From sequence record NC_048054.1: DNA of 64,000 bases. One strand, written 5' to 3'. A model generated the notes under the pieces. The model did no database searches, was not told the DNA's origin, and saw only the letters and a list, made by a program, of their open reading frames with translations. This document shows, piece by piece, positions 42,847 through 59,394 of this stretch (positions within the stretch are counted from its first letter, which is position 1; each line of letters begins with the position of its first letter). The position numbers and the translations under genes were made by a program.

Positions 42847-44478
42847 ATGGCACGTATCGAAACTAGCACTAACCTGGTTGGCAAAACTATCGTCCTGCTG
42901 AACGGCACCAAATCTAAAATCGAAGATGCAATCGCGTCTGGTTATAAAGTGAAGGGCCTGACCAAGCGTATCGCCACCCGCTGCATCATCAAAGAAGGCT
43001 CTCACTTCCGCGAAATCGAGCGCATGAACATGAGCCAGCTGGAAGATACAGGCGAAGGTTATGTTAAGCTGAAAGATGCGAAAGCGTCTGGCAAGAAAAC
43101 TGCCAAGAAAGAAACAGCCGCGCCGAAAGCGTCTGGTAAGAAAGCTGGCACCAAGAAAACTTCTGGCAAGAAAGATGCCAAGCCGTCGAAAGACAAAGAG
43201 CCGAAAGTTCGCCGTAAATCTTCCGAAGAGCAATCCGAAGATTACCAGAATCTGGCACACGCTATCATCAAAGGCGGCAAAGCCAAGCCTGCTGTTGAGA
43301 TCGAAGCTGTAGACGAAGCGCTGACCGATAGCGTAGCGAAACGCCTCGCCGACTACGTGCTTAACTCAGACGTTGCGCGTGTTTGTGCTGACAACAAAAC
43401 GCCGATCGCTAACGCACTGGACGTTACTTACGGTGCCGAGTATGCGCCTGAAGGCAACGTGCTCCAGATTACTCTGAACCTGCAATATGCGGCGCCTGTT
43501 AAAACTGTTGCTGCTGCGCCTGAGCTGGACGAAGCTGTTGCGAAACGTGCTGCCAAGCTCGCTGCTAAGAAAATTGGCAAAGTGTTGGCGAAAGCAATCA
43601 AAGCTGCGTTCGACCTCGAAGATGCGAACGACCTGCTGCCAGGCACCGTGCTGACTAACGACGGTACTGAGTTCGTGTTCGTCGGTGAGTCTGCGAAACA
43701 TGCAGGCAAAGCGCTGATGTATAGCGCCGATACTGACGGCTTCAAATCATTCGGTGCCGACAAACTGGCCGACTTCGAAATCGTCGCTGATGAAAGCGAA
43801 GAAGAGGAAGACGAAGATGAAATTGAAGACGAAGATGAAATCGAGGAGGAAGAAGAAGAGGAAGAATCCTCCGAAGACGAAGAAGACGGTGAAGAAGACG
43901 ATGGCGAAGAAGAAGACGGCGAATCGCAAGATGCCGAATACGAGTTCGTCGCAGTCGATGCCGATCAACTTGAACTGGTTAATAAGAAAGTAACCGCTAA
44001 GTATCACGCCGCTCTGGCTGAACGCTTCGGTGTTGATGAAGAGGCGCTGGCCCCTGGCCTGATGCTGACTGATGGCGAAACTACTTTCGCTTACCTCGGC
44101 TGCGATAGCAAAGGTGGTCTGCTGGTTATCGACCTGTCTGACGATGCAGACGAAGATGATAACGTGCTGGTGTATAGCAAAGCCGATATCAAAACTCTGA
44201 CCGACTTTAGCCCTGTGATCGATAGCGGTGAAGCTGACGATTCAGAAGAAGAAGACGGTGAGGAAGAAGACGGCGAAGAAGAAGACTTCGAAGAAGATGG
44301 CGAAGAGGAAGATGACGAAGAAGAGGAAGACGACTTCGAGTTCAACGACCTGCCGTCCGAAGATCTGGAAGACCTGTCTGATGACGAACTGCGTGACCGC
44401 GTAGTTGAAGCCGGCCTGACCACTGTGCGCAAAGCTGAAAACATGACTGCTGCACAACTGCGCAAGCTGCTGAAATAA
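42847..44478 (+). CDS. modular acidic protein (shared N-domain, Lys-rich linker, two repeated beta domains, D/E tracts, C-terminal HeH-like module)
   Basis: Repeats LLPGTVLTNDGTEFVFVG and LAPGLMLTDGETTFAYLG; C-terminal LSDDELRDRVVEAGLTTVRKAENMTAAQLRKLL. Confidence 0.9.
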   Translation: MARIETSTNLVGKTIVLLNGTKSKIEDAIASGYKVKGLTKRIATRCIIKEGSHFREIERMNMSQLEDTGEGYVKLKDAKASGKKTAKKETAAPKASGKKAGTKKTSGKKDAKPSKDKEPKVRRKSSEEQSEDYQNLAHAIIKGGKAKPAVEIEAVDEALTDSVAKRLADYVLNSDVARVCADNKTPIANALDVTYGAEYAPEGNVLQITLNLQYAAPVKTVAAAPELDEAVAKRAAKLAAKKIGKVLAKAIKAAFDLEDANDLLPGTVLTNDGTEFVFVGESAKHAGKALMYSADTDGFKSFGADKLADFEIVADESEEEEDEDEIEDEDEIEEEEEEEESSEDEEDGEEDDGEEEDGESQDAEYEFVAVDADQLELVNKKVTAKYHAALAERFGVDEEALAPGLMLTDGETTFAYLGCDSKGGLLVIDLSDDADEDDNVLVYSKADIKTLTDFSPVIDSGEADDSEEEDGEEEDGEEEDFEEDGEEEDDEEEEDDFEFNDLPSEDLEDLSDDELRDRVVEAGLTTVRKAENMTAAQLRKLLK

Positions 44479-47931: not shown

Positions 47932-50900
47932 ATGTCTAATAATAACCTGGGCGCTGCTGCAACATTCGGCACTGAGACTCAACGCCAGATTGCTGACGAA
48001 CAACGTCGTGCTAATTCGTCTGAGTCCGGCCACATCAACAAATGTACCATCGTCGTTCTGACTTCGCTTAACGCACACGGCCGCTTCTCTTACATGAGCG
48101 CCAGCGAGCAACTGCATGAACGTCCGATCGAAGGCAAAGTGATGGATCGTCTGCCGAGCCTGATCGAACGCGCATCGGGTCCTTCGACCGACCAAAACAG
48201 CGCGTACTACATTCTGCATCCGAACAATGGTGTGCCTACTCGTATTGACGAGCGCATCAAAGTGGGTGAAGGTGATGCAGTCATCGTTTCGTATACTGTA
48301 AATAAAGCAGTGTCAGAGATGCACGGTAGTCTGTCGCTTGCTCTGTTCAGTGCTGGCGAAACAGATCTCGCAGACCTCGCAGCCGAGTTTGGTGTTCACT
48401 CAATCTCGATTGTCGAAGAAAGCAAAGCTGGTCCGTACATTCGCGCACTGGCTACGCAGGTGGAAAATCTGCAAACTGTAAATATCACGAGCATTGATGA
48501 AACTGACGGCGCTTTCGATAAAGCAGTAATCGACTACAGCGCGTTGCCGGCCAATCCTGTTACTGTGCTGTCCGGCGCTGTGCGTACTTTCATCATGCAA
48601 ACCATTAGCGGCGAGATCGTTGCTGCAATTCCAAATAACGGAGAACTGAACGTGAAACAACCTACCAACGCAACGCCTGTTAACCTGAACGAAGACTTCG
48701 ACGCAGAAGACGAAGTTGTTGATCAGCAGGAAGACGGCGAAGAAGAAGTTGCGGCCGGCACGGATCTGTTTGGCTACAAAGCGGAAACGCTGTCTGTTGA
48801 ACAAATGTCCGAAGCGCTTGAAGCTATCGGCTATACCCTGGACGCGATGAACGAAGACGGCATCCGTGAATCGTTCGAAACTGAACAGGCCATCTGGCTT
48901 GAAAAAGGCGAAAGCGCCGAAGACGACGAAGAAGAAGTTGACGGCGAAGCTGATGATGACGCCGAAGACGAAGAAGAAGCGGACGAAGAAGTAGAAGAAG
49001 ACTTCGACGCTGTTCAATTCCTCGCTTCTGTGCTGGTGGCCGAAGAGCTGGACCGCGCCGGTCTGAAAGTTCTGGTTCGCACTCAGGATATCACGGTGAT
49101 GAAGAAAGACACCGTTGAAACTCTGACTGCGAAGTTGCTGGAAGTTGTTGAAGGTGCGACTGAGCAGGAGATGATTGAACTGCTGAACACCTTCGTCGGC
49201 GCTCTGCAAGAGCACGAAATCGCCTGCCCTAACATGCTGGCCGCTCTGTCTTCTGATGAAGAAGACGAAGAAGATCTGGACGAAGAAGAATCCGATGAAG
49301 AAGAATCGGAAGACGACGAGTCCGAAGACGGCGAAGAAGAAGACGAAGATGAAGTGCAGCACCAGATTGACGCTGTTACCGATCCTCTCGACTACTTCCA
49401 GTTTGCTGGTGGTATGCTGACTGCCGAACAACGCGCCGCTGCTGTTACTGCTATGGGCGAAGACGCATCAACGATGACCATCGTTCAGGTAATGAAAGCG
49501 TTCACCCGCATTCAGGGTCAGGCCAACGAAGAAGTTGAAGCCGAAGAAGTTGAAACCTCTAACGCCGAGCAAGTTGTTGAACTGCTGCGCCAGTACGACG
49601 ACGCTACCATTCAGCACGTAGCTGAAAGCCTGGGCATTCTGGTCGATGAATGCGAAACCGCTGACGAAATGATCGAAGCGATCATTAACGGCGGTAGCGA
49701 AGATGACTTCGCTGCTGTTGAAGAAATCGCAACCAACTACGGTGTTGACCTGTCAGAGATTGCTGATGAAGACGGTCTGTCGTTTGTTGACGCGCTGCTG
49801 GCAGTGCTGCCTGAGTTCCTGGCTGATGACGAATCTGCTGATCAGGAAGACGAAGGCGAAAGCGAAAGCGACGAAGATGAAGAAGCCGACTTCGTGGAAG
49901 AAGAAGACGAAGAAGAAGACAGCGCCGAGCAGTCTGCTGAGTCTGAAACTAACGATCATCTGAAATTCGTTAAAGACGTTGACACTACCAACTCTGTCGG
50001 CCCGATGCTGTCTGTCGATATGGACCAGACGCTGATCATCAACTTCACTCTGACTGACGGCAACACCTACGGTCCGATTGAAAGCGAACTGTCCGACGTG
50101 AACGGCTTCAACTATCGCTACCCGTTCAATCTGGGTAAACCGGGTAAAGCGCCTGGTTCAATGCACCTGCCAGCCCAGTCTATTCTGGATATTCTGGAGC
50201 GCGTTGGTACTACTCGCTTCCTCGCTAACCCGAAAACGTTTGACATTGAAACGTGGGCAGAAAGTCTGGAGCAGACTATCAAGCAGGACCTCGATGCTAA
50301 CCTGTACGCTGGCCGCATCGAAGACGGCATGGACCCTACCGAAGCGGGTCTGATTGTTGGTGACTTCATCGACGAAGAAGAAATGGCTCAGGCTGCTGAG
50401 ATGGGCTATCTCGACGAAGACGGTCTGGACGAAATGCAGGGTGATCATCTGCCGCTGGCTAGCCTGTACAGTGCTAAGTCTCGCGTTCGTCCTGTTCAGG
50501 TTGACACCGCACACGTTGCGCTGCACACCACTGTGATGAACGTAGCTGTCCCAGGCTTCTGGGGTGACTCCGAAGTTTCGCGTCTGGTGCAGGCCGCTGT
50601 TAACCGCGTTATCTCTCTGGCTGAAACAGTCGAAGGTATCAAAGTGTACGCTGGCTTCACTATGGAGTCCGCTGCTCTGCTGAACAACGACCGCCTGTTC
50701 GAAGCGCTGACCGCACTGCGCGCCATGGAAAACGTACAGTCCTACTCTGCTGCTGACGCTGCAAACTTCGACGATGCCGAAGACGTGATCGAAGTAGCAA
50801 GTGCGCTGGACTCTCGTGACCTGCCTCTGGCTGTGCTGTCTGGTGGTCTGGCCGCTGCAACGTTCGACAACGGCGGTGACCTGACCGTGCTGGTGCTGTG

Positions 50901-50955
50901 TTCTCCTGAGGACGAAGACGACGAGTCCGCAGAAGACGAAGGCGACGACGAGTAA
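47932..50955 (+). CDS. large acidic modular protein (1007 aa)
   Basis: Globular-looking N- and C-terminal regions separated by several short helical modules and D/E linkers. Confidence 0.9.
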   Translation: MSNNNLGAAATFGTETQRQIADEQRRANSSESGHINKCTIVVLTSLNAHGRFSYMSASEQLHERPIEGKVMDRLPSLIERASGPSTDQNSAYYILHPNNGVPTRIDERIKVGEGDAVIVSYTVNKAVSEMHGSLSLALFSAGETDLADLAAEFGVHSISIVEESKAGPYIRALATQVENLQTVNITSIDETDGAFDKAVIDYSALPANPVTVLSGAVRTFIMQTISGEIVAAIPNNGELNVKQPTNATPVNLNEDFDAEDEVVDQQEDGEEEVAAGTDLFGYKAETLSVEQMSEALEAIGYTLDAMNEDGIRESFETEQAIWLEKGESAEDDEEEVDGEADDDAEDEEEADEEVEEDFDAVQFLASVLVAEELDRAGLKVLVRTQDITVMKKDTVETLTAKLLEVVEGATEQEMIELLNTFVGALQEHEIACPNMLAALSSDEEDEEDLDEEESDEEESEDDESEDGEEEDEDEVQHQIDAVTDPLDYFQFAGGMLTAEQRAAAVTAMGEDASTMTIVQVMKAFTRIQGQANEEVEAEEVETSNAEQVVELLRQYDDATIQHVAESLGILVDECETADEMIEAIINGGSEDDFAAVEEIATNYGVDLSEIADEDGLSFVDALLAVLPEFLADDESADQEDEGESESDEDEEADFVEEEDEEEDSAEQSAESETNDHLKFVKDVDTTNSVGPMLSVDMDQTLIINFTLTDGNTYGPIESELSDVNGFNYRYPFNLGKPGKAPGSMHLPAQSILDILERVGTTRFLANPKTFDIETWAESLEQTIKQDLDANLYAGRIEDGMDPTEAGLIVGDFIDEEEMAQAAEMGYLDEDGLDEMQGDHLPLASLYSAKSRVRPVQVDTAHVALHTTVMNVAVPGFWGDSEVSRLVQAAVNRVISLAETVEGIKVYAGFTMESAALLNNDRLFEALTALRAMENVQSYSAADAANFDDAEDVIEVASALDSRDLPLAVLSGGLAAATFDNGGDLTVLVLCSPEDEDDESAEDEGDDE

Positions 50956-51843: not shown

Positions 51844-51943
51844 TAATCTGTAAAAGTTACCTGCAATCGAAACTGTAAACACTAATTGAAGTTCGAACCG
51901 AGCAACAAGCTCACACTTTATAAAATCCCGGAGCATTAAACAA

Positions 51944-52489
51944 ATGGCTAAAGTAACTAAAGGCACTTCACTGGCACCTACCCTGGCATCTCGCATCGCT
52001 AAAAAATCTGGTTCCATTAGCACCTCTAAAGTGAAGCCTGCTGAACTGCCGCACGACATTCTGATCGAAACAGTTCAGGCTGTTGAGCTGATTGGTTTCA
52101 TTACCGACCGCACCGATAACAGCGTGACCATTCGTCATAAAAAAGGCCACGGCTCTTCTGCGCAGATCATCTCAACCTTCGGTCCGAACCAAATCCTGTC
52201 TATCCTGGGCGATGCTGGCCAGCACGGTAGCGTTACTGCTCTGGTTAACGCGCCGGTTCGTGAGTACAAAGGCTTCACCGTCAAATACGTCGGCGCCATG
52301 ATTCACGCAACCTCTGTTGAAACTGGCGAAGTGATTCACATCAACACCGCACTGCCTGGCTTCAACGTTCGTCCTACTGTAAACGAAAACGCGGCCGCTA
52401 AGAAGTATGGCACCGCTGCTCCAACCAAAGCTAAGAAAGGCGATAAATCTGACAAGCCTGCGAAGCTGGTAAAGAAAGTAAAAAAGTAA
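51944..52489 (+). CDS. hypothetical beta-rich protein with Lys-rich termini
   Basis: GGAG RBS; basic N- and C-terminal tails; preceded by CTGTAAA motifs. Confidence 0.85.
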   Translation: MAKVTKGTSLAPTLASRIAKKSGSISTSKVKPAELPHDILIETVQAVELIGFITDRTDNSVTIRHKKGHGSSAQIISTFGPNQILSILGDAGQHGSVTALVNAPVREYKGFTVKYVGAMIHATSVETGEVIHINTALPGFNVRPTVNENAAAKKYGTAAPTKAKKGDKSDKPAKLVKKVKK

Positions 52490-52638
52490 TAAAGTCTGAC
52501 GAAGACTTTTAACTGACTTTCTGAAATCTGTAAACATTAAGTATGCAGCGAGATAAAATGTTCTCGCTGCCTGTCTCTCGAAATCTGTAAATCTTAATTG
52601 AAGCAACGTCGCTTCTAATCAAACAGGAAAAACAAATC

Positions 52639-53460
52639 ATGGCTAAAGCTGCTAAAGCAACCGTTAACACCGCATCTCTGGTTCTGGCTAAAATGCTGGG
52701 TGTTGTAGTAGAGAACGCGACTGACAAAGAAATCGCTGCGCTGCTCACCTCTGCCGGCCTGACCGTGTCTGGTGGCAAAGTTGTTAAAGCTGACAAAGGC
52801 GGTAAAGCTGCTAAAGGCAAAAAGTCTAAGGCACCAACCGTTGCTGAAATCGTCGCTGCTGTGAAAGACGAAGAAGAACTGGATATCTCCGGCGTCGATG
52901 AAGACACTCTGCGCGAAGCAGTTGTCAAAGCCAAACTGTCTACCGCCAAGAAAGCTAAAGCGCTGGACGAAGACGAACTGCGCGAACTGCTGAACGATAA
53001 CCTGGGCGGCGAGTCCGAAGAGGACGAAGACGAAGACGAAGAAGAGGACGACGAAGACGAGGACGAAGACGACTCGGACGACGAAGATGAAGACGGCGAC
53101 GACGACGAAGACGAAGACGACGAAGACTCTGATGATGAAGAAGAGGACGACGAAGACGGCGACGACGACGACGACGAAGACGAAGACGACGAGGACGAAG
53201 AAGAGGACGACGAAGACGAAGATGAAGACGAGGACGAAGATGATGAACTCGACCTCGATTCACTCGACGAAGACGAACTCCGCGCCCTGGTAATCGAACA
53301 CAAGCTGGCCACCGCCAAAAAGGCGAAGAAAATGGACGAAGATGAACTGCGCGAACTCTGCGAAAGTCACTTCGGTGGTGAAGACGACGAAGACGACGAA
53401 GACGAAGATGAAGACGACGAAGACTTCGACGATGAAGACGAAGACGAAGACGACGAATAA
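52639..53460 (+). CDS. hyperacidic low-complexity protein with two HeH-like modules
   Basis: AGGA RBS; basic N-terminus; two copies of DED(T/E)LR...KL(S/A)TAKKAK..DEDELREL flanking an ~80-residue near-pure D/E tract. Confidence 0.9.
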   Translation: MAKAAKATVNTASLVLAKMLGVVVENATDKEIAALLTSAGLTVSGGKVVKADKGGKAAKGKKSKAPTVAEIVAAVKDEEELDISGVDEDTLREAVVKAKLSTAKKAKALDEDELRELLNDNLGGESEEDEDEDEEEDDEDEDEDDSDDEDEDGDDDEDEDDEDSDDEEEDDEDGDDDDDEDEDDEDEEEDDEDEDEDEDEDDELDLDSLDEDELRALVIEHKLATAKKAKKMDEDELRELCESHFGGEDDEDDEDEDEDDEDFDDEDEDEDDE

Positions 53461-53678
53461 TATCTTCTGACCGGCGCGCCCCTCTAGTTCTCTGTGAATG
53501 AGCGAGGGGCAAATATTCGAGTTAAAATGATTCGAATATTTTTGTAAAAAGTTTCAAAATTCCTTGCAGACGTATGTTGAATATAATAATGTACGTCTAC
53601 AGGGAAACAAACCTGAACAAATTTATCTTTCATCCAGCGGTGAAAACGCCGCATCAAAAACAAAGTAAGGAATATCGT

Positions 53679-54215
53679 ATGTCTAAGAAAGCAATCAGCG
53701 GCCTGAACAAAGAAATCCGTGCCCTGGACAAATCTGAAAAAAATCTGGTTAAAACTGCTGCCAGCCTGACCAAAGAAGCCGAAGCGATCGCACAGCGCCG
53801 CGCCGGTCTGACCGCTCAGGTTGAAGCTCTGTCTGCTGACGGCGCTGCTCCTGCTAAAGCGACCAAAGCTGCTAAACCAGCGAAAGCTGAGAAAGCCGCT
53901 AAGCCTGCTAAAGCAGAAAAAGCTGGTAAGAAAGCGAAAGCTGAGAAAGCCGAAAAGCCTGCTAAGGCCGAGAAAGCTGGTAAGAAAGCTAAAGCAGAAA
54001 AACCTGCTAAAGCTGAGAAAGCCGCTAAACCTGCTAAAGCAGACAAAAAAGCAAAAGCTGAAAAGCCGGCCAAAGCTGATAAAAAAGCTAAAGCCGAAAA
54101 ATCTGCTAAGCCTGCGAAAGCAGACAAAGCTGCCAAGAAAGTGAAAGGCGATAAAAAAGCCAAAGGCGGCAAGCAGAAAAAACAAGAAGAAGATTTCGAC
54201 TTCGAAATGGAATAA
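53679..54215 (+). CDS. histone H1-like (AlgP/Hc2-type) Lys/Ala/Pro-repeat protein
   Basis: Start revised to ATG 53679 (AAGGA RBS); N-terminal coiled coil, eight PAKA(E/D/T)K repeats plus KKAKAEK repeats, acidic EEDFDFEME end; no TM segment. Confidence 0.8.
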   Translation: MSKKAISGLNKEIRALDKSEKNLVKTAASLTKEAEAIAQRRAGLTAQVEALSADGAAPAKATKAAKPAKAEKAAKPAKAEKAGKKAKAEKAEKPAKAEKAGKKAKAEKPAKAEKAAKPAKADKKAKAEKPAKADKKAKAEKSAKPAKADKAAKKVKGDKKAKGGKQKKQEEDFDFEME

Positions 54216-54837: not shown

Positions 54838-55578
54838 ATGGGCCAGAAACTGTCTGAACAAATCAACCGCTATTTTAATCTCATGGAAAAAATCCGTGAG
54901 CAAATGTACCGCGTCCTGCCAGTCAGTGATCGCTATCTGTGTGTCGTAAGTTTCAGCACACAACTCCAGGCACTCCAGTGTGTACTGGTGAGTAAGGCCT
55001 CGTTAATGGAAGCAAAGCTGATCGAAGGGCTAACGGGTCAAGAGCTGGTGACGTATGGCCAGTACCTGCGAACTGCCGAAGAGTGGGTTGCTAACGGTAT
55101 GCAGGACGATTATCCGTTCACTCAGGACAAAGACGTGTATGCCGAGTACCGCAGCCTGACGCGCGATGACTCTCAGCCTGTACCTGAAATGGACGACGAA
55201 GAAGACCTCGACGAACAAGAGCTGGATAACCTGCGCACCTCAATTCTCTGCTCAGACAAAGCCACCCTGATGCAGATGTATGCAGATGAAAATCTCGGCA
55301 CAAAAGCCAAAGCCGCTGACATGGATGCGGAGCAATTGCAGGAAGCTCTGTGTGAACACTACGGTCTTAACCCTGATGTTCCTGTCAGACTGGTCGATGT
55401 TGTTGGCGAAATGGTTAAGCGCATTGAAAGCCTTCCGAATCATGCTGCCCTCAAAGAAGTTGATCTCCTGACTAAGGAAGAACTGCTTAGTCTCGCAGAC
55501 GCGTGGGACATTGAAAAGACAGCGCATGAGCACACTATGCGCTCTCTTGTTAAGGGCTATCTGCTGCGCCGTACCTAA
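54838..55578 (+). CDS. hypothetical protein with C-terminal HeH-like modules
   Basis: SDKATLMQMYADENLGTKAKAADMDAEQLQEALCEHYG and LTKEELLSLADAWDI. Confidence 0.8.
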   Translation: MGQKLSEQINRYFNLMEKIREQMYRVLPVSDRYLCVVSFSTQLQALQCVLVSKASLMEAKLIEGLTGQELVTYGQYLRTAEEWVANGMQDDYPFTQDKDVYAEYRSLTRDDSQPVPEMDDEEDLDEQELDNLRTSILCSDKATLMQMYADENLGTKAKAADMDAEQLQEALCEHYGLNPDVPVRLVDVVGEMVKRIESLPNHAALKEVDLLTKEELLSLADAWDIEKTAHEHTMRSLVKGYLLRRT

Positions 55579-55715: not shown

Positions 55716-57746
55716 ATGGCCAAAGCGCCTAAAGCTGCCAAAGTTAAAAAGAAAACGGGAGATGGGTCCGAACAAGAAGGATTCATGATTGCCGAAGGCC
55801 TTGATGGTATTCGTCTAAATCCCGGGATGTACATGGGGGAACGCGGTGCCGATATGGCTTACCGTGCGGTTAAAGAGCCAGTTGATAACGACTATGATGA
55901 ATACATCGCAGGCCGAAACAAACTTATCGAAGTGGTCATCGACTACGATAACGACCTGAACGTTGTTGCCGATATGGCGAAAGGTATTCCGACCGACTTC
56001 AAGAAACTGAAAGACGGTTCGAAAGAAACGATCATGACCGCAGCGTTTAGCCGAGCACACGCTGGTGGTAAGTTCGACGATAAAGCATATAAGACCTCTG
56101 CTGGTACTCACGGCGTAGGCGTTGCAGCACTGAACGCAATTTCAAGTCGCCTGCGTGTATGGTCAATGTACAAAGGCGGTTGTGCGTATCAGATGTGGGA
56201 GTGCGGTGTCGCCAAGTCAGGCAAAGACCCGAAACAGGTTAAAGCAGTAGACAAAGATGTTATGAGCCTACTGCGTGAAAAGAAACACAGCAAGTACGGT
56301 ACGATTGTCGCATGGACTCTCGACCAGACTGTTGTGTCTGCTGACGTACAGCGCGGTAAGAAGCTGCCGAAGAACTATCGTCACGCTGCGCCAGACCCAG
56401 CACAGCTTGGTTCATGGTTGCGTAATATGTCTATGCTCAACCCAGGTCTTGAAGTCCGCCTGACGTTGATCAAGAAAGGCAAGCGCAAAGAGTTCACCTT
56501 CCTCAACAAGAAAGACTTGGCACACGTTGTTAAGACGATGGTTGAAGAACGCGAGCTTGGCTCAGTTGGTAAGCCGTTCATCTTCAAGAACGACAACATC
56601 ACCGCTGCGCTGACATGGACCGACCATGCAGACACAGACAACTTCCTGTCTTTCGTTAACACCAGCCCGACAATTGACGGCGGCTGGCACGTTGTTGGTT
56701 TCCGTGATGCGTTGTTCGAAGCAATTAAGCCTTTCATGAAAGAGCCGAAAGGTAAGAGCAAGAAGAAGCAGGGCTTCAAACAAGAAGACTTGCTTATCGG
56801 CCTGACTGGCATGTTCGACTGGCGTATGCACGGTGCTCAGTACACCTCGCAGGTTAAAGACAAGCTGGCGAGCCGTGTCGAAAAAGAAGTGTACGAAATG
56901 CTGAAAGATGCTTTCGTGAAATACTTCAAAGAGAATAAGAAGGTCGCAACCACGATCATCAAACGCGCCGAAGCGATGAACAAAGGCCGTGAAGAATTGT
57001 CGGCTGTCGTGAAGTCGATGGCAGACACGAAGAAAAAGCTGAAAGGTAACGCACTGCCTGCTGACCTCGTAGTCGCCAACAAATGTAAGCCGCATGAGCG
57101 TGAGCTTGTCGTGGTGGAAGGGGACTCTGCTGGTGGTACTGCGAAAGATGCGCGTAACCCTGACTATCAGGAAGTTATGAAAGCTGGCGGTAAGCCGCTT
57201 AACGGTCTGAAAGCGTCACTGGCTGATGTGCTCAAGCACAAAGAAGTGCAGGGCATGTTGGTATCTATCGGTGCTGACCTGAAATCGTTAGACCCGAAAG
57301 CAGAAGCGCCTCAACTCAGCACGAAGAATCTGCGTATCGGCAACATCCTGTTCCTTGCAGATGCTGACCCTGATGGCTTCCACATCAACGTGCTGTTCCT
57401 GGGTGTTATCTATCGTCTGCTGCCTGACCTGATGAAAGAAGGGCGTGTGTGGATTGTAGACGCTCCGCTGTACAACGTCATTCACAACGGCAAGCACTAC
57501 GGTGGCATGACCTTTGAAGAATGCCGCAAGAAAGCACCTGCTGCCGTGAAAGACAAAGATATCATTCGCGCAAAAGGTTGGGGTGAAGTTGAGCCTGACA
57601 TTCTTGAAGCGATTGCATTCAATCCGAAGACGCGCCGACTCATTCGTGTTAACCCGTTTGAGAACGCTGAACAAGAGCGTTTCTTCCGCGGCGTTGTAGC
57701 AGAAGATGCAGTGCACCGTCGTCGTTTACTTGGTCTGGAGAGCTAA
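55716..57746 (+). CDS. gyrB: type IIA topoisomerase ATPase/TOPRIM subunit (GyrB/ParE-like)
   Basis: GHKL motifs [29 protein letters not shown]; [30 protein letters not shown]. Confidence 0.95.
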
Positions 57747-57747
57747 C

Positions 57748-59394
57748 ATGGCAGTTAAGCCGAAGAAAGTTAAAGTCGTGAAGAAAGCGACTGCGGTAGC
57801 GAAGCCCGCTAAGGTGAAAGTCAAATCGAAAGCTGTTGCTGTCGATGACATGCCGAAGAAAAAGAAGAAAAGCGAAGTATCGGTTGCAGGCGCTATCACT
57901 TCCCTCTATCCGATGCTTGGTCAGGACGAGGCCAACATTCGTGATGAAGGTCTTGCTGACTATACGCGCCGCGCTCTTGGTGTGTATGGCTCTTACGTTG
58001 TTGAAGACCGAGCTATCGCTGACTATCGTGATGGCCTCAAGCCAGTTCACAGGGCGCTACTCTGGTCCATGTGTGACTTGAGCTTGCGTCCAAGTTCTGC
58101 GTTCAAGAAAGCGGCTCGTACTGTTGGTGACACAATCGGTAAGTATCACCCACACGGTGACCAAGCGTGTTACGGTGCGATGGTGACGATTGCAAACACA
58201 GTGCCTCCTGCTGTAGCTGGTCAAGGTAACTGGGGCCGTCCTGATGACCCAGCCGCAGCAATGCGTTACACAGAAGCGCGTATGTCGAAGTTCACCGGTG
58301 CGTTCCTGCTCGACCCTGACTATCTCGAAGTTGTGCCACGCGTACCGAACTTCTCAAACGATCTTGAGATACCGCTGTATCTGCCTGCGCTTATGCCGTA
58401 CATGTTGTTCAACGGCTCAGTACCTGCACCAGCATATGGTGTTAAGTGCGGTAACCCGTCGTTCAGCTTTACGTCTGTCAGTAAGGTCGTGTGTGAGATG
58501 CTGAACGGCAAAGAGTACACAGCGAAGAAGCTGGCCGATGCTCTTGAGATTCGTCATGAGTTCGGTTGTCTGGATGTGTCGTCTGATGAAGACCACTTCC
58601 AGCTTATCTCTACAGGCAAAGGCAAAGTGACGTATGAGCCAGTGATGAAGATTGACGAGAAATCGAAAATCATCACCGTTCAGACGTATGTGCCTGGTGG
58701 CATGGCGAACACTGCTGGTATCACGAAGAAGCTGGAGAAGATTGCAGAGTGGCAAGGTGTTGTCTCTGCTGCTAACGCCTCTGGTAAGAAGAACAAGAAC
58801 GCGGGCCCGTATGGTGCGGCGTTTGAGATCAAAGTTCGTGGCTCAGAAGACACGCTGTATGAAATCGCAAGCAAGGTGCAGAAGGAAATCACCGCAGCGA
58901 TCAACTACACGTTGGGTGTAACCATTCGTCGTGCTGACGCCAGTAACAAGTTCAAGTACCTGAACTACCTCGAATACTTCAAAGCGTGGATTGCGTACCG
59001 CATCAAGCTGGAAGTTCGTATGCTGGAGAACAAGCTGGCGAAAGCGGAGCGAGCGTTGCACATTCAGCAAGTCTATCTGTGGGCAGTGGACAACATGGAC
59101 AAACTGCTTAAGGTGCTGCCGAAAGTTCTGGTTGCATCTGACCCTGACGCAACGCTTGCGAAGCTGTGCAAGATTCCTGTTGATGATGCGAAAATCATCC
59201 TCGACCGTCAGGTGCGTAAACTGGCTAAACTGGAACGTGCTGGTCTGCTGGCCAAGATTAAAGAAATCAAGGCCGAGATTGCTGAATACAAAGGCGGTCT
59301 GAAAGAACCAGGCAAATACGCTGCGGCAAGCACTGCTGTAAAAGTTAAGGCGTATCTCAAGTCTCCAGACGATAAGCTGCCTGTAAGTCTTTGA
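57748..59394 (+). CDS. gyrA: type IIA topoisomerase breakage-reunion subunit (GyrA/ParC-like), no C-terminal pinwheel
   Basis: Start revised to ATG 57748; [35 protein letters not shown] (catalytic Tyr); 548 aa including a Lys-rich N-terminal extension. Confidence 0.95.

Follow-up and report, generated by a model that had tools for sequence, protein, structure and literature searches.

The C-terminal tail of histone H1 and its partner prothymosin-alpha form a pair in which a disordered polycation rich in Lys, Ala and Pro (K/A/P) is matched by an oppositely charged polyanion rich in Asp and Glu (D/E). K/A/P repeats bind DNA in H1 tails, Hc2 and DdbA (PMC2848022, PMC3643593), and the number of repeats in Hc2 varies through tandem repeats in the DNA (PMC2848022). 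A similar juxtaposition of opposite charges is encoded by gp319, gp320 and gp321, three adjacent genes of Dickeya phage vB_DsoM_AD1 (AD1; genus Alexandravirus). They lie in the last 64 kb of its record NC_048054.1 (261,658 bp), the stretch analyzed here and referred to as the window (subtracting 197,658 from a record position gives the window position). Both gp320 and gp321 are annotated in the public record as coding sequences with the product "hypothetical protein." An initial examination of the letters without database searches, the sequence-only reading, took gp321 for a histone-H1-like protein and gp320 for its prothymosin-like chaperone. AD1 has been placed in the "hairy myovirus" or "Lupandier" group together with Erwinia phages Alexandra, Y3 and Yoloswag, the Dickeya JA phages, Pseudomonas phages PaBG and Lu11 and the marine phage NCTB (PMC7412058, PMC6143709). 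Hosts in the lineage are Dickeya, Erwinia, Yersinia and Pseudomonas, plus that of one marine phage, and the group is not a nucleus-forming lineage. We tentatively propose, at a shade under an even chance, that gp319–gp321 are a conserved non-virion trio acting by charge on DNA in the replication phase.

The polybasic member, gp321 (53679..54215, + strand), encodes 178 residues, 30% of them Lys or Arg, with a net charge of +28, and ranks first in Lys content among the 327 open reading frames (ORFs) of the genome. Its first 54 residues (53679..53840, +) exhibit the 3.5-residue hydrophobic periodicity of a heptad coiled coil, with a power of 0.73 at period 3.5 as compared to 0.24–0.29 at periods 3.0 and 4.0, and this N-terminal coiled coil is probably an oligomerization domain. 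Pfam returned only weak coiled-coil matches for the region, and residues 1–60, a query too short for the large protein database searched, gave no match there at E ≤ 0.01. The domain is kept in 57 phage records. Residues 55–168 (53841..54182, +; net +31) contain 44 Lys, 39 Ala and 8 Pro, with exactly eight matches to PAKA(E/D/T)K, and are encoded by DNA with 27- and 54-nt tandem repeats. The last ten residues (169–178; 54183..54212, +) form an acidic-aromatic tip, in which two Phe show no variation across 12 phages, PaBG and NCTB among them. Among orthologues the repeats are reshuffled and the F-x-F tip is unchanged. gp321 matches PHROG 38087, a family without assigned function.

Immediately upstream, gp320 (52639..53460, +) encodes a 273-residue protein that is 48% Asp or Glu and carries a net charge of −105. 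It ranks first in acidity among the 327 non-overlapping genome ORFs (D+E fraction 0.48 vs. a proteome mean of 0.12, standard deviation 0.05). The N-terminal part (residues 1–66; 52639..52836, +) is basic, with a net charge of +8, an MAKAAK start, two predicted helices and a Lys-rich linker. Helical module A (residues 67–124; 52837..53010, +) and helical module B (residues 205–247; 53251..53379, +) flank the D/E tract (residues 125–204; 53011..53250, +), in which 74 of 80 residues are Asp or Glu and the longest pure D/E run measures 29 residues. The modules are internal duplicates, 62% identical over 34 residues (E 4e-7). An AlphaFold2 (AF2) model predicts both with confidence, as three short helices each (predicted local distance difference test [pLDDT] ∼90), and gives the intervening tract a pLDDT below 55, consistent with its predicted disorder. 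An acidic tail (residues 248–273; 53380..53457, +) completes the protein, its last 14 residues, which include a single Phe, being invariant in close relatives. The coordinates, the coiled coil, the eight repeats and the D/E tract of about 80 residues between two modules, as first described from the sequence, were all confirmed. Orthologues retain the helical modules and, in close relatives, the last 14 residues, and vary in their low-complexity tracts: the D/E tract, which is encoded by GACGAA-type tandem repeats, differs in length and is almost absent in P0003, and the P0011 orthologue has one additional module. gp320 matches PHROG 30618, likewise without assigned function, and falls into 11 clusters among 5.8 billion proteins. 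Residues 110–176 of the neighboring gp323 (54838-55578) are weakly related to the helical module (PHROG 30618, E 0.005), which may be reused in that gene. Long reverse-strand ORFs over the repeats (e.g., 52509-53318, Ser-rich) were set aside as frame artifacts of GAA/GAC codon repeats.

The first trio member, gp319 (51944..52489, +; net +14), has a basic disordered N-terminal tail, an all-beta core (residues ∼37–146; AF2 pLDDT ∼90) and a Lys-rich C-terminal tail, and its fold found matches in BFVD only from the same phage group. By tblastn, gp320 and gp321 are adjacent in Alexandravirus, Sasquatchvirus (Y3), Yoloswagvirus, Snuvirus, Rivsvirus and a Yersinia phage. Salmondvirus (the JA phages) has the N-domain of gp321 as well, and direct translation of JA11 yielded the same gp320 and gp321 architectures. 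Distant gp319 homologues are present in PaBG and NCTB, where the next two genes encode a polyacidic protein with an MAKKK or MAKAKK start and then a protein with a coiled coil, K/A/P repeats and an acidic-aromatic tip; BLAST was blind to these gp320- and gp321-like genes. Each of 20 IMG/VR loci anchored on gp319, five of them uncultivated, carried the trio in identical order, so that with PaBG and NCTB the arrangement holds in 22/22 genomes from at least seven genera plus uncultivated genomes. The co-conservation and synteny of gp320 and gp321, proposed earlier as a check, are thereby borne out as part of a trio. Net charges of the gp319-like, gp320-like and gp321-like proteins ranged over +11 to +16, −84 to −106 and +26 to +32 in the 20 IMG/VR loci, with values of +14, −93 and +31 in PaBG and +11, −100 and +28 in NCTB. 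Charge is thus nearly constant despite reshuffled repeats and lengths of the acidic protein from 150 to 294 residues. An acidic-aromatic end also occurs in some gp319 orthologues. Conserved net charges, invariant terminal motifs and fixed gene order argue that the trio functions jointly. All trio members are named as hypothetical or misnamed in the databases: the gp321 orthologue of pEa_SNUABM_5 (segment L018 1501-2007) is labeled "putative valyl-tRNA synthase," that of NCTB is labeled "Large-conductance mechanosensitive channel," and PaBG gp125 has been noted as resembling a ribosome assembly factor. Each of these names is a compositional artifact; the remaining two artifacts are at L009 7523-8107 and L008 6634-7086.

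Composition, architecture, co-conservation, conserved net charge, the genomic arm and a shared promoter-like motif are the observations from which we infer that the trio binds DNA, that its members interact and that they act in the replication phase. gp321 would be a multivalent polycation in which the coiled coil joins two or more long K/A/P tails. These tails would bind DNA non-specifically, bridging or coating it in the manner of linker-histone and bacterial H1-like tails. gp320 would be the polyanionic counterpart, with specific contacts provided by its basic N terminus and small helical modules, and its disordered D/E tract could compete with DNA for polycations and so buffer or release gp321, gp319 and other Lys-tailed proteins. 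gp319 would contribute a folded beta domain with basic tails, and the acidic-aromatic tips might serve as short docking motifs for a common partner.

Taken as homology, the comparison with histone H1 and prothymosin made in the sequence-only reading did not hold. For gp321, no linker histone domain was found in Pfam at E ≤ 0.1 and no H1 chain from the PDB at E ≤ 1, nor is there a globular winged helix; residues 55–168 resemble the Lys/Ala/Pro-rich disordered tail of H1 in composition only. The only PDB match of gp321 was to a Lys/Ala-rich extension of ribosomal protein L23 (E 0.23), far below the cut-off. For gp320, Pfam held no prothymosin match and the PDB profile search returned only acidic tracts at E > 0.09, and its modeled folded modules conflict with the small, fully disordered prothymosin type. 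As sequence, profile and fold searches found no homology, the comparison is one of compositional analogy only. The label "HeH-like" for the two modules found no confirmation. When isolated modules were searched against Pfam at E ≤ 10, the sole HeH-type signal was a weak, sub-threshold match of module B to Ish1 (E 0.028, score 15.2 vs. a cut-off of 26.6), and Foldseek with the gp320 model returned no SAP, LEM or HeH entry. The AF2 models of gp319 and gp320 gave no PDB match at E ≤ 0.001, and a gp319 profile found nothing significant among PDB sequences. Pfam, NCBIfam and PADLOC held no family for gp320 or gp321, and for gp317–gp323 as a whole Pfam, PHROGs, NCBIfam and PADLOC yielded only function-less PHROGs and sub-threshold compositional matches. 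gp321 does share with AlgP/Hc2-type proteins tandem Lys-rich short repeats of variable copy number.

Expression signals and gene content bear on when the trio might act. The window is wholly non-structural, with RecA, dUTPase, endonuclease, radical SAM and topoisomerase genes, and the structural genes are on the opposite strand at about 44–160 kb. The motif A(T/A)CTGTAAA occurs at 33 exact sites in the AD1 genome, as compared to approximately one expected per 50–64 kb segment, every site being co-oriented with local genes. Most copies are 28–45 nt upstream of start codons of replication genes; the genes so preceded include two for DNA polymerase and those for a clamp loader, primase, sigma factor, SSB, ParB-like protein and DNA methyltransferase, and none of the 33 sites genome-wide precedes a capsid, sheath, tube or tail gene. 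Sites in the window are at 2697, 46391, 48474, 51003, 51303, 51414, 51846, 51871, 52526, 52583 and 59398; others are in L011–L014, which are pieces of the AD1 genome (L012 33502, L013 5682 and L014 45242 correspond to record positions 83502, 105682 and 195242). Two copies are upstream of gp319 (51846..51879, +), the second within a 26-nt element common to gp320, two of the promoter-like motifs precede gp320 (52526..52591, +), and gp318 is also directly preceded by a copy. The motif core coincides with a Lu11 feature annotated as "putative middle/late promoter." From their position, we infer that these sites are a promoter class of replication-phase genes, probably read with phage sigma factor gp237. 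A scan for generic sigma-70 promoters and terminators performed no better than on shuffled sequence, and a candidate variant motif upstream of gp321 was rejected, its TGTAAA core being not conserved in relatives.

Neither a structural-module location nor late-gene signals were found for the trio. A plain virion fiber identity, which the sequence-only reading had named as a refutation, is argued against by the non-structural arm and by the motif that gp319 and gp320 share with replication genes and not with capsid or tail genes. A virion-internal role is a related and less likely explanation, to which we assign a low probability: gp321 would be packaged to neutralize DNA charge, and gp320 would be scaffold-like or ejected. 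Basic internal proteins and acidic scaffolds do occur in large myoviruses, the genes for terminase and portal follow gp321 on the same strand at a distance of about 12 kb, and the Lu11 annotation of the motif as "middle/late" would also fit. However, the opposite-strand head module has its own acidic, scaffold-like gene in gp140 (L013 5682-7676, record 105682-107676, minus strand), with the genes for the major head protein and maturation protease on either side. With a net charge of −125, an acidic tract of about 130 residues and Cys-rich motifs, gp140 appears to be a scaffold or core protein; its annotation as "ATPase" is doubtful. Likewise, the late arm has a K/A/P protein distinct from gp321 and more basic than it, gp184 (L014 8658-9347, record 158658-159347, minus strand), whose gene is near that of the head–tail connector. 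It is a second histone-H1/AlgP-like protein, with 26% Lys, repeats of the K/A/P type and hardly any acidic residues, and a candidate for binding DNA inside the head. The absence of the promoter-like motif before capsid or tail genes also speaks against packaging, as does the absence of the PaBG homologues gp124–126 from the 14 proteins identified from PaBG virions in a shallow survey (PMC7412058).

The leader of gp321 contains a hairpin (53563..53603, +) with a 12-bp stem and a 17-nt loop, approximately 75–115 nt upstream of the start codon. It is present in one copy per genome and conserved with covariation in ten phages, whose alignment has 91.7% of cells paired and 4/12 pairs changed on both sides, a score reached by 0/500 shuffles. 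RNAalifold predicted 17 pairs in the leader, including five compensatory ones, and the conserved G-U pairs favor an RNA on the + strand. Rfam holds no family for the hairpin, which could be an mRNA-stabilizing 5′ structure or an autoregulatory binding site. Pairing of its flank with the Shine-Dalgarno sequence, seen in a single-sequence fold of AD1, is not in the ten-phage consensus fold and is not claimed. A GC-rich hairpin directly 3′ of the gp320 stop codon (53479..53509, +), conserved in Y3 and JA11 and with no clear T-run, may terminate transcription or mark where RNA processing separates the gp320 and gp321 transcripts. Were the gp321 leader hairpin an RNA-binding autoregulatory site, this would suit a further explanation, in which the resemblance is compositional only and the functions of the three proteins are unrelated and might, for example, be associated with RNA or the ribosome. 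That the only named matches of gp321 are to the L23 extension, far below the cut-off, points in the same direction. However, across 22 genomes the order is fixed, net charges are conserved and terminal motifs are shared, which argues for linked function, and we consider three unrelated functions highly improbable. In the tail module, a ∼1.4-kb annotation-free gap between gp114 (PAAR) and gp115 (L012 33502-34957; record 83502-84957) is bordered upstream by one copy of the promoter-like motif.

The non-structural location and the replication-class motif fit intracellular action in general, and with it the main rival to a charge-based trio. According to this explanation, gp320 would be a DNA-anchored, flexible DNA mimic directed against host proteins: the basic N terminus would tether it to DNA, and the acidic tract would occupy the DNA-binding surfaces of RNA polymerase, nucleoid proteins or restriction and defense nucleases. 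gp321 would have a separate role, for example in host nucleoid compaction. The layout of gp320 parallels that of SPO1 Gp44, a DNA-anchored RNA polymerase inhibitor that works through a flexible DNA-mimic domain (PMC8208478), and phages commonly use acidic DNA mimics against restriction (PMC3439906). In contrast, searches of Pfam, PHROG, NCBIfam, PADLOC, the PDB and folds revealed no similarity of gp320 to Ocr, ArdA or Gp44. Strict adjacency to two basic proteins and near-constant charge in 22 genomes would not be predicted for host targets in Dickeya, Erwinia, Yersinia, Pseudomonas and a marine host, and the D/E tract is variable in length and nearly absent in P0003. On balance we regard host-directed mimicry as unlikely.

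Charged segments are not confined to the trio. The sequence-only reading had described a charge-polarized block at 41.3–55.6 kb, a description that applies to gp307, gp309, gp312, gp313, gp316, gp317 and gp319–321, whereas gp310, gp314, gp315, gp318 and gp322 are ordinary. Within it, gp317 (47932-50955; 1007 residues, net −193) and gp312 (42847-44478; 543 residues, net −78) each have several D/E tracts, and gp317 is conserved in 57 phage records, drawn from the genera in which the trio occurs. The topoisomerase II subunits gp324 and gp325 (55716..59394, +) each bear a Lys-rich extension; such tails are real and clade-wide, with differing length, but are N-terminal rather than C-terminal. Lys-rich N-terminal tails, often with an MAK start, are found on topoisomerase gp324, the clamp loader, the ParB-like protein, terminase, gp219 and gp319. 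The proposal that the charged proteins form one module with the topoisomerase operon fails beyond the enterobacterial subgroup and NCTB, in which the linkage holds. As a clade-wide rule this linkage was rejected: the PaBG trio is about 13 kb from topoisomerase II, and no trio stands upstream of topoisomerase in Lu11, PaBG or Motura. A C-terminal acidic run followed by Pro and then a Lys run occurs in exactly 3 of 327 ORFs, namely the DnaB-like helicase gp001 (L011 34-1455), the clamp loader gp205 (L014 22487-23776) and the SSB gp238 (L014 45242-46516, record 195242-196516), and appears to be a terminal tag that replisome proteins share. In gp238 it ends a block-polyampholyte tail of about 150 residues, in which acidic blocks alternate with Lys/Ser blocks and the final eight residues are Lys. 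This tail is kept in uncultivated relatives at only 36–38% core identity, including a 312-kb genome; the SSB-anchored IMG/VR scan behind this comparison was swamped by poly-Asp patterns and gave only six loci.

These features could be explained by a shell-less replication compartment, in which polyanions (gp320, perhaps gp317 and gp312), polycations (gp321 and gp319) and phage DNA would form a complex coacervate that the replisome enters via its acid-run/Lys-run tags. Disordered proteins of opposite and conserved net charge, the SSB tail retained at low core identity, the restriction of the tag to three replisome ORFs and the giant acidic neighbors gp317 and gp312 are all consistent with such a compartment, and phase separation matters in phage SPO1 development (PMC13401047). 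This evidence is, however, entirely compositional, charged tails can simply increase non-specific affinity for DNA, and acidic tracts occur in the head module too; we consider a coacervate doubtful. Its extended form, a charge-coded compartment that would also recruit DnaB, SSB, clamp loader and topoisomerase and would do electrostatically what a protein shell does for the phage nucleus, seems similarly improbable.

For the proposed trio acting by charge on replicating DNA, several points count on the other side. Profile, PDB and fold searches found no homology of the trio to characterized DNA-binding or chaperone families. The promoter class is read from the motif, the "middle/late" label of the Lu11 annotators having been given without transcript data, and gp321 has no exact motif and has its own leader, so that co-expression with gp320 does not follow. 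The polyacidic tract of gp140 in the head module means that acidity alone does not define a replication module, and the terminase and portal genes downstream share the strand of gp321. Finally, Lys-rich and D/E-rich proteins yield few usable tryptic peptides, which together with the shallowness of the PaBG proteome makes absence from it weak evidence. Overall, the sequence-only reading is partly supported.

Nucleus-forming jumbo phages illustrate that phages can compartmentalize replication. A trio with extreme and constant net charge, together with similar charge tags on the replisome, bears on how non-nucleus jumbo phages organize genomes of 250 kb. If the trio does organize or shield replicating DNA, it would represent a simple, sequence-recognizable form of charge-driven genome organization in a virus, and a natural test case for mutual regulation of disordered proteins of opposite charge. 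Should the proteins instead be a host-directed DNA mimic and a nucleoid compactor, they would still constitute a new pair of host take-over proteins.

Described systems resemble individual parts of this locus. In E. coli SSB and T7 gp2.5, a disordered linker is capped by a short acidic tail that includes an aromatic residue and serves as a docking motif. AD1 SSB, in contrast, has no acidic tip and ends in poly-Lys, and the tip is found instead on gp321, gp320 and some gp319 orthologues. SPO1 Gp27 is a modular phage protein that uses phase separation to concentrate the machinery of DNA transactions (PMC13401047), but it is a single transcription factor of a Bacillus phage, whereas the putative system here would be multi-protein and charge-complementary. 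T7 Ocr and ArdA resemble gp320 in their high acidity. They are DNA competitors of phage or plasmid origin (PMC3439906, PMC2731889) and rigid folded mimics with patterned charges, whereas the gp320 tract is predicted to be disordered and varies in length. SPO1 Gp44, which acts inside infected cells, combines an N-terminal DNA-binding part, a flexible acidic domain and then a disordered tail (PMC8208478). gp320 shows no sequence or fold similarity to it, and differs in its duplicated helical modules, much longer D/E tract and obligate basic neighbors. As compared to H1, gp321 has neither the winged-helix globular domain nor any sequence relation, and has a coiled coil and an acidic-aromatic tip; as compared to prothymosin-alpha, gp320 has a basic N terminus and folded helical modules, and a third partner, gp319, is present. 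Chlamydia Hc2, Pseudomonas AlgP and the N-domain of Streptomyces DdbA (PMC3643593) share with gp321 short Lys-rich tandem repeats of variable number and a basic pI, and in gp321, as in Hc2, repeat number varies through DNA tandem repeats. The charge density of gp321 is lower than that of these proteins because of the regular Glu/Asp within its repeats, and gp184 of AD1 is closer to them than gp321 is. gp321 is set apart from all three by its constant net charge, its coiled coil and F-x-F acidic tip, its encoding by a phage and its polyacidic neighbor.

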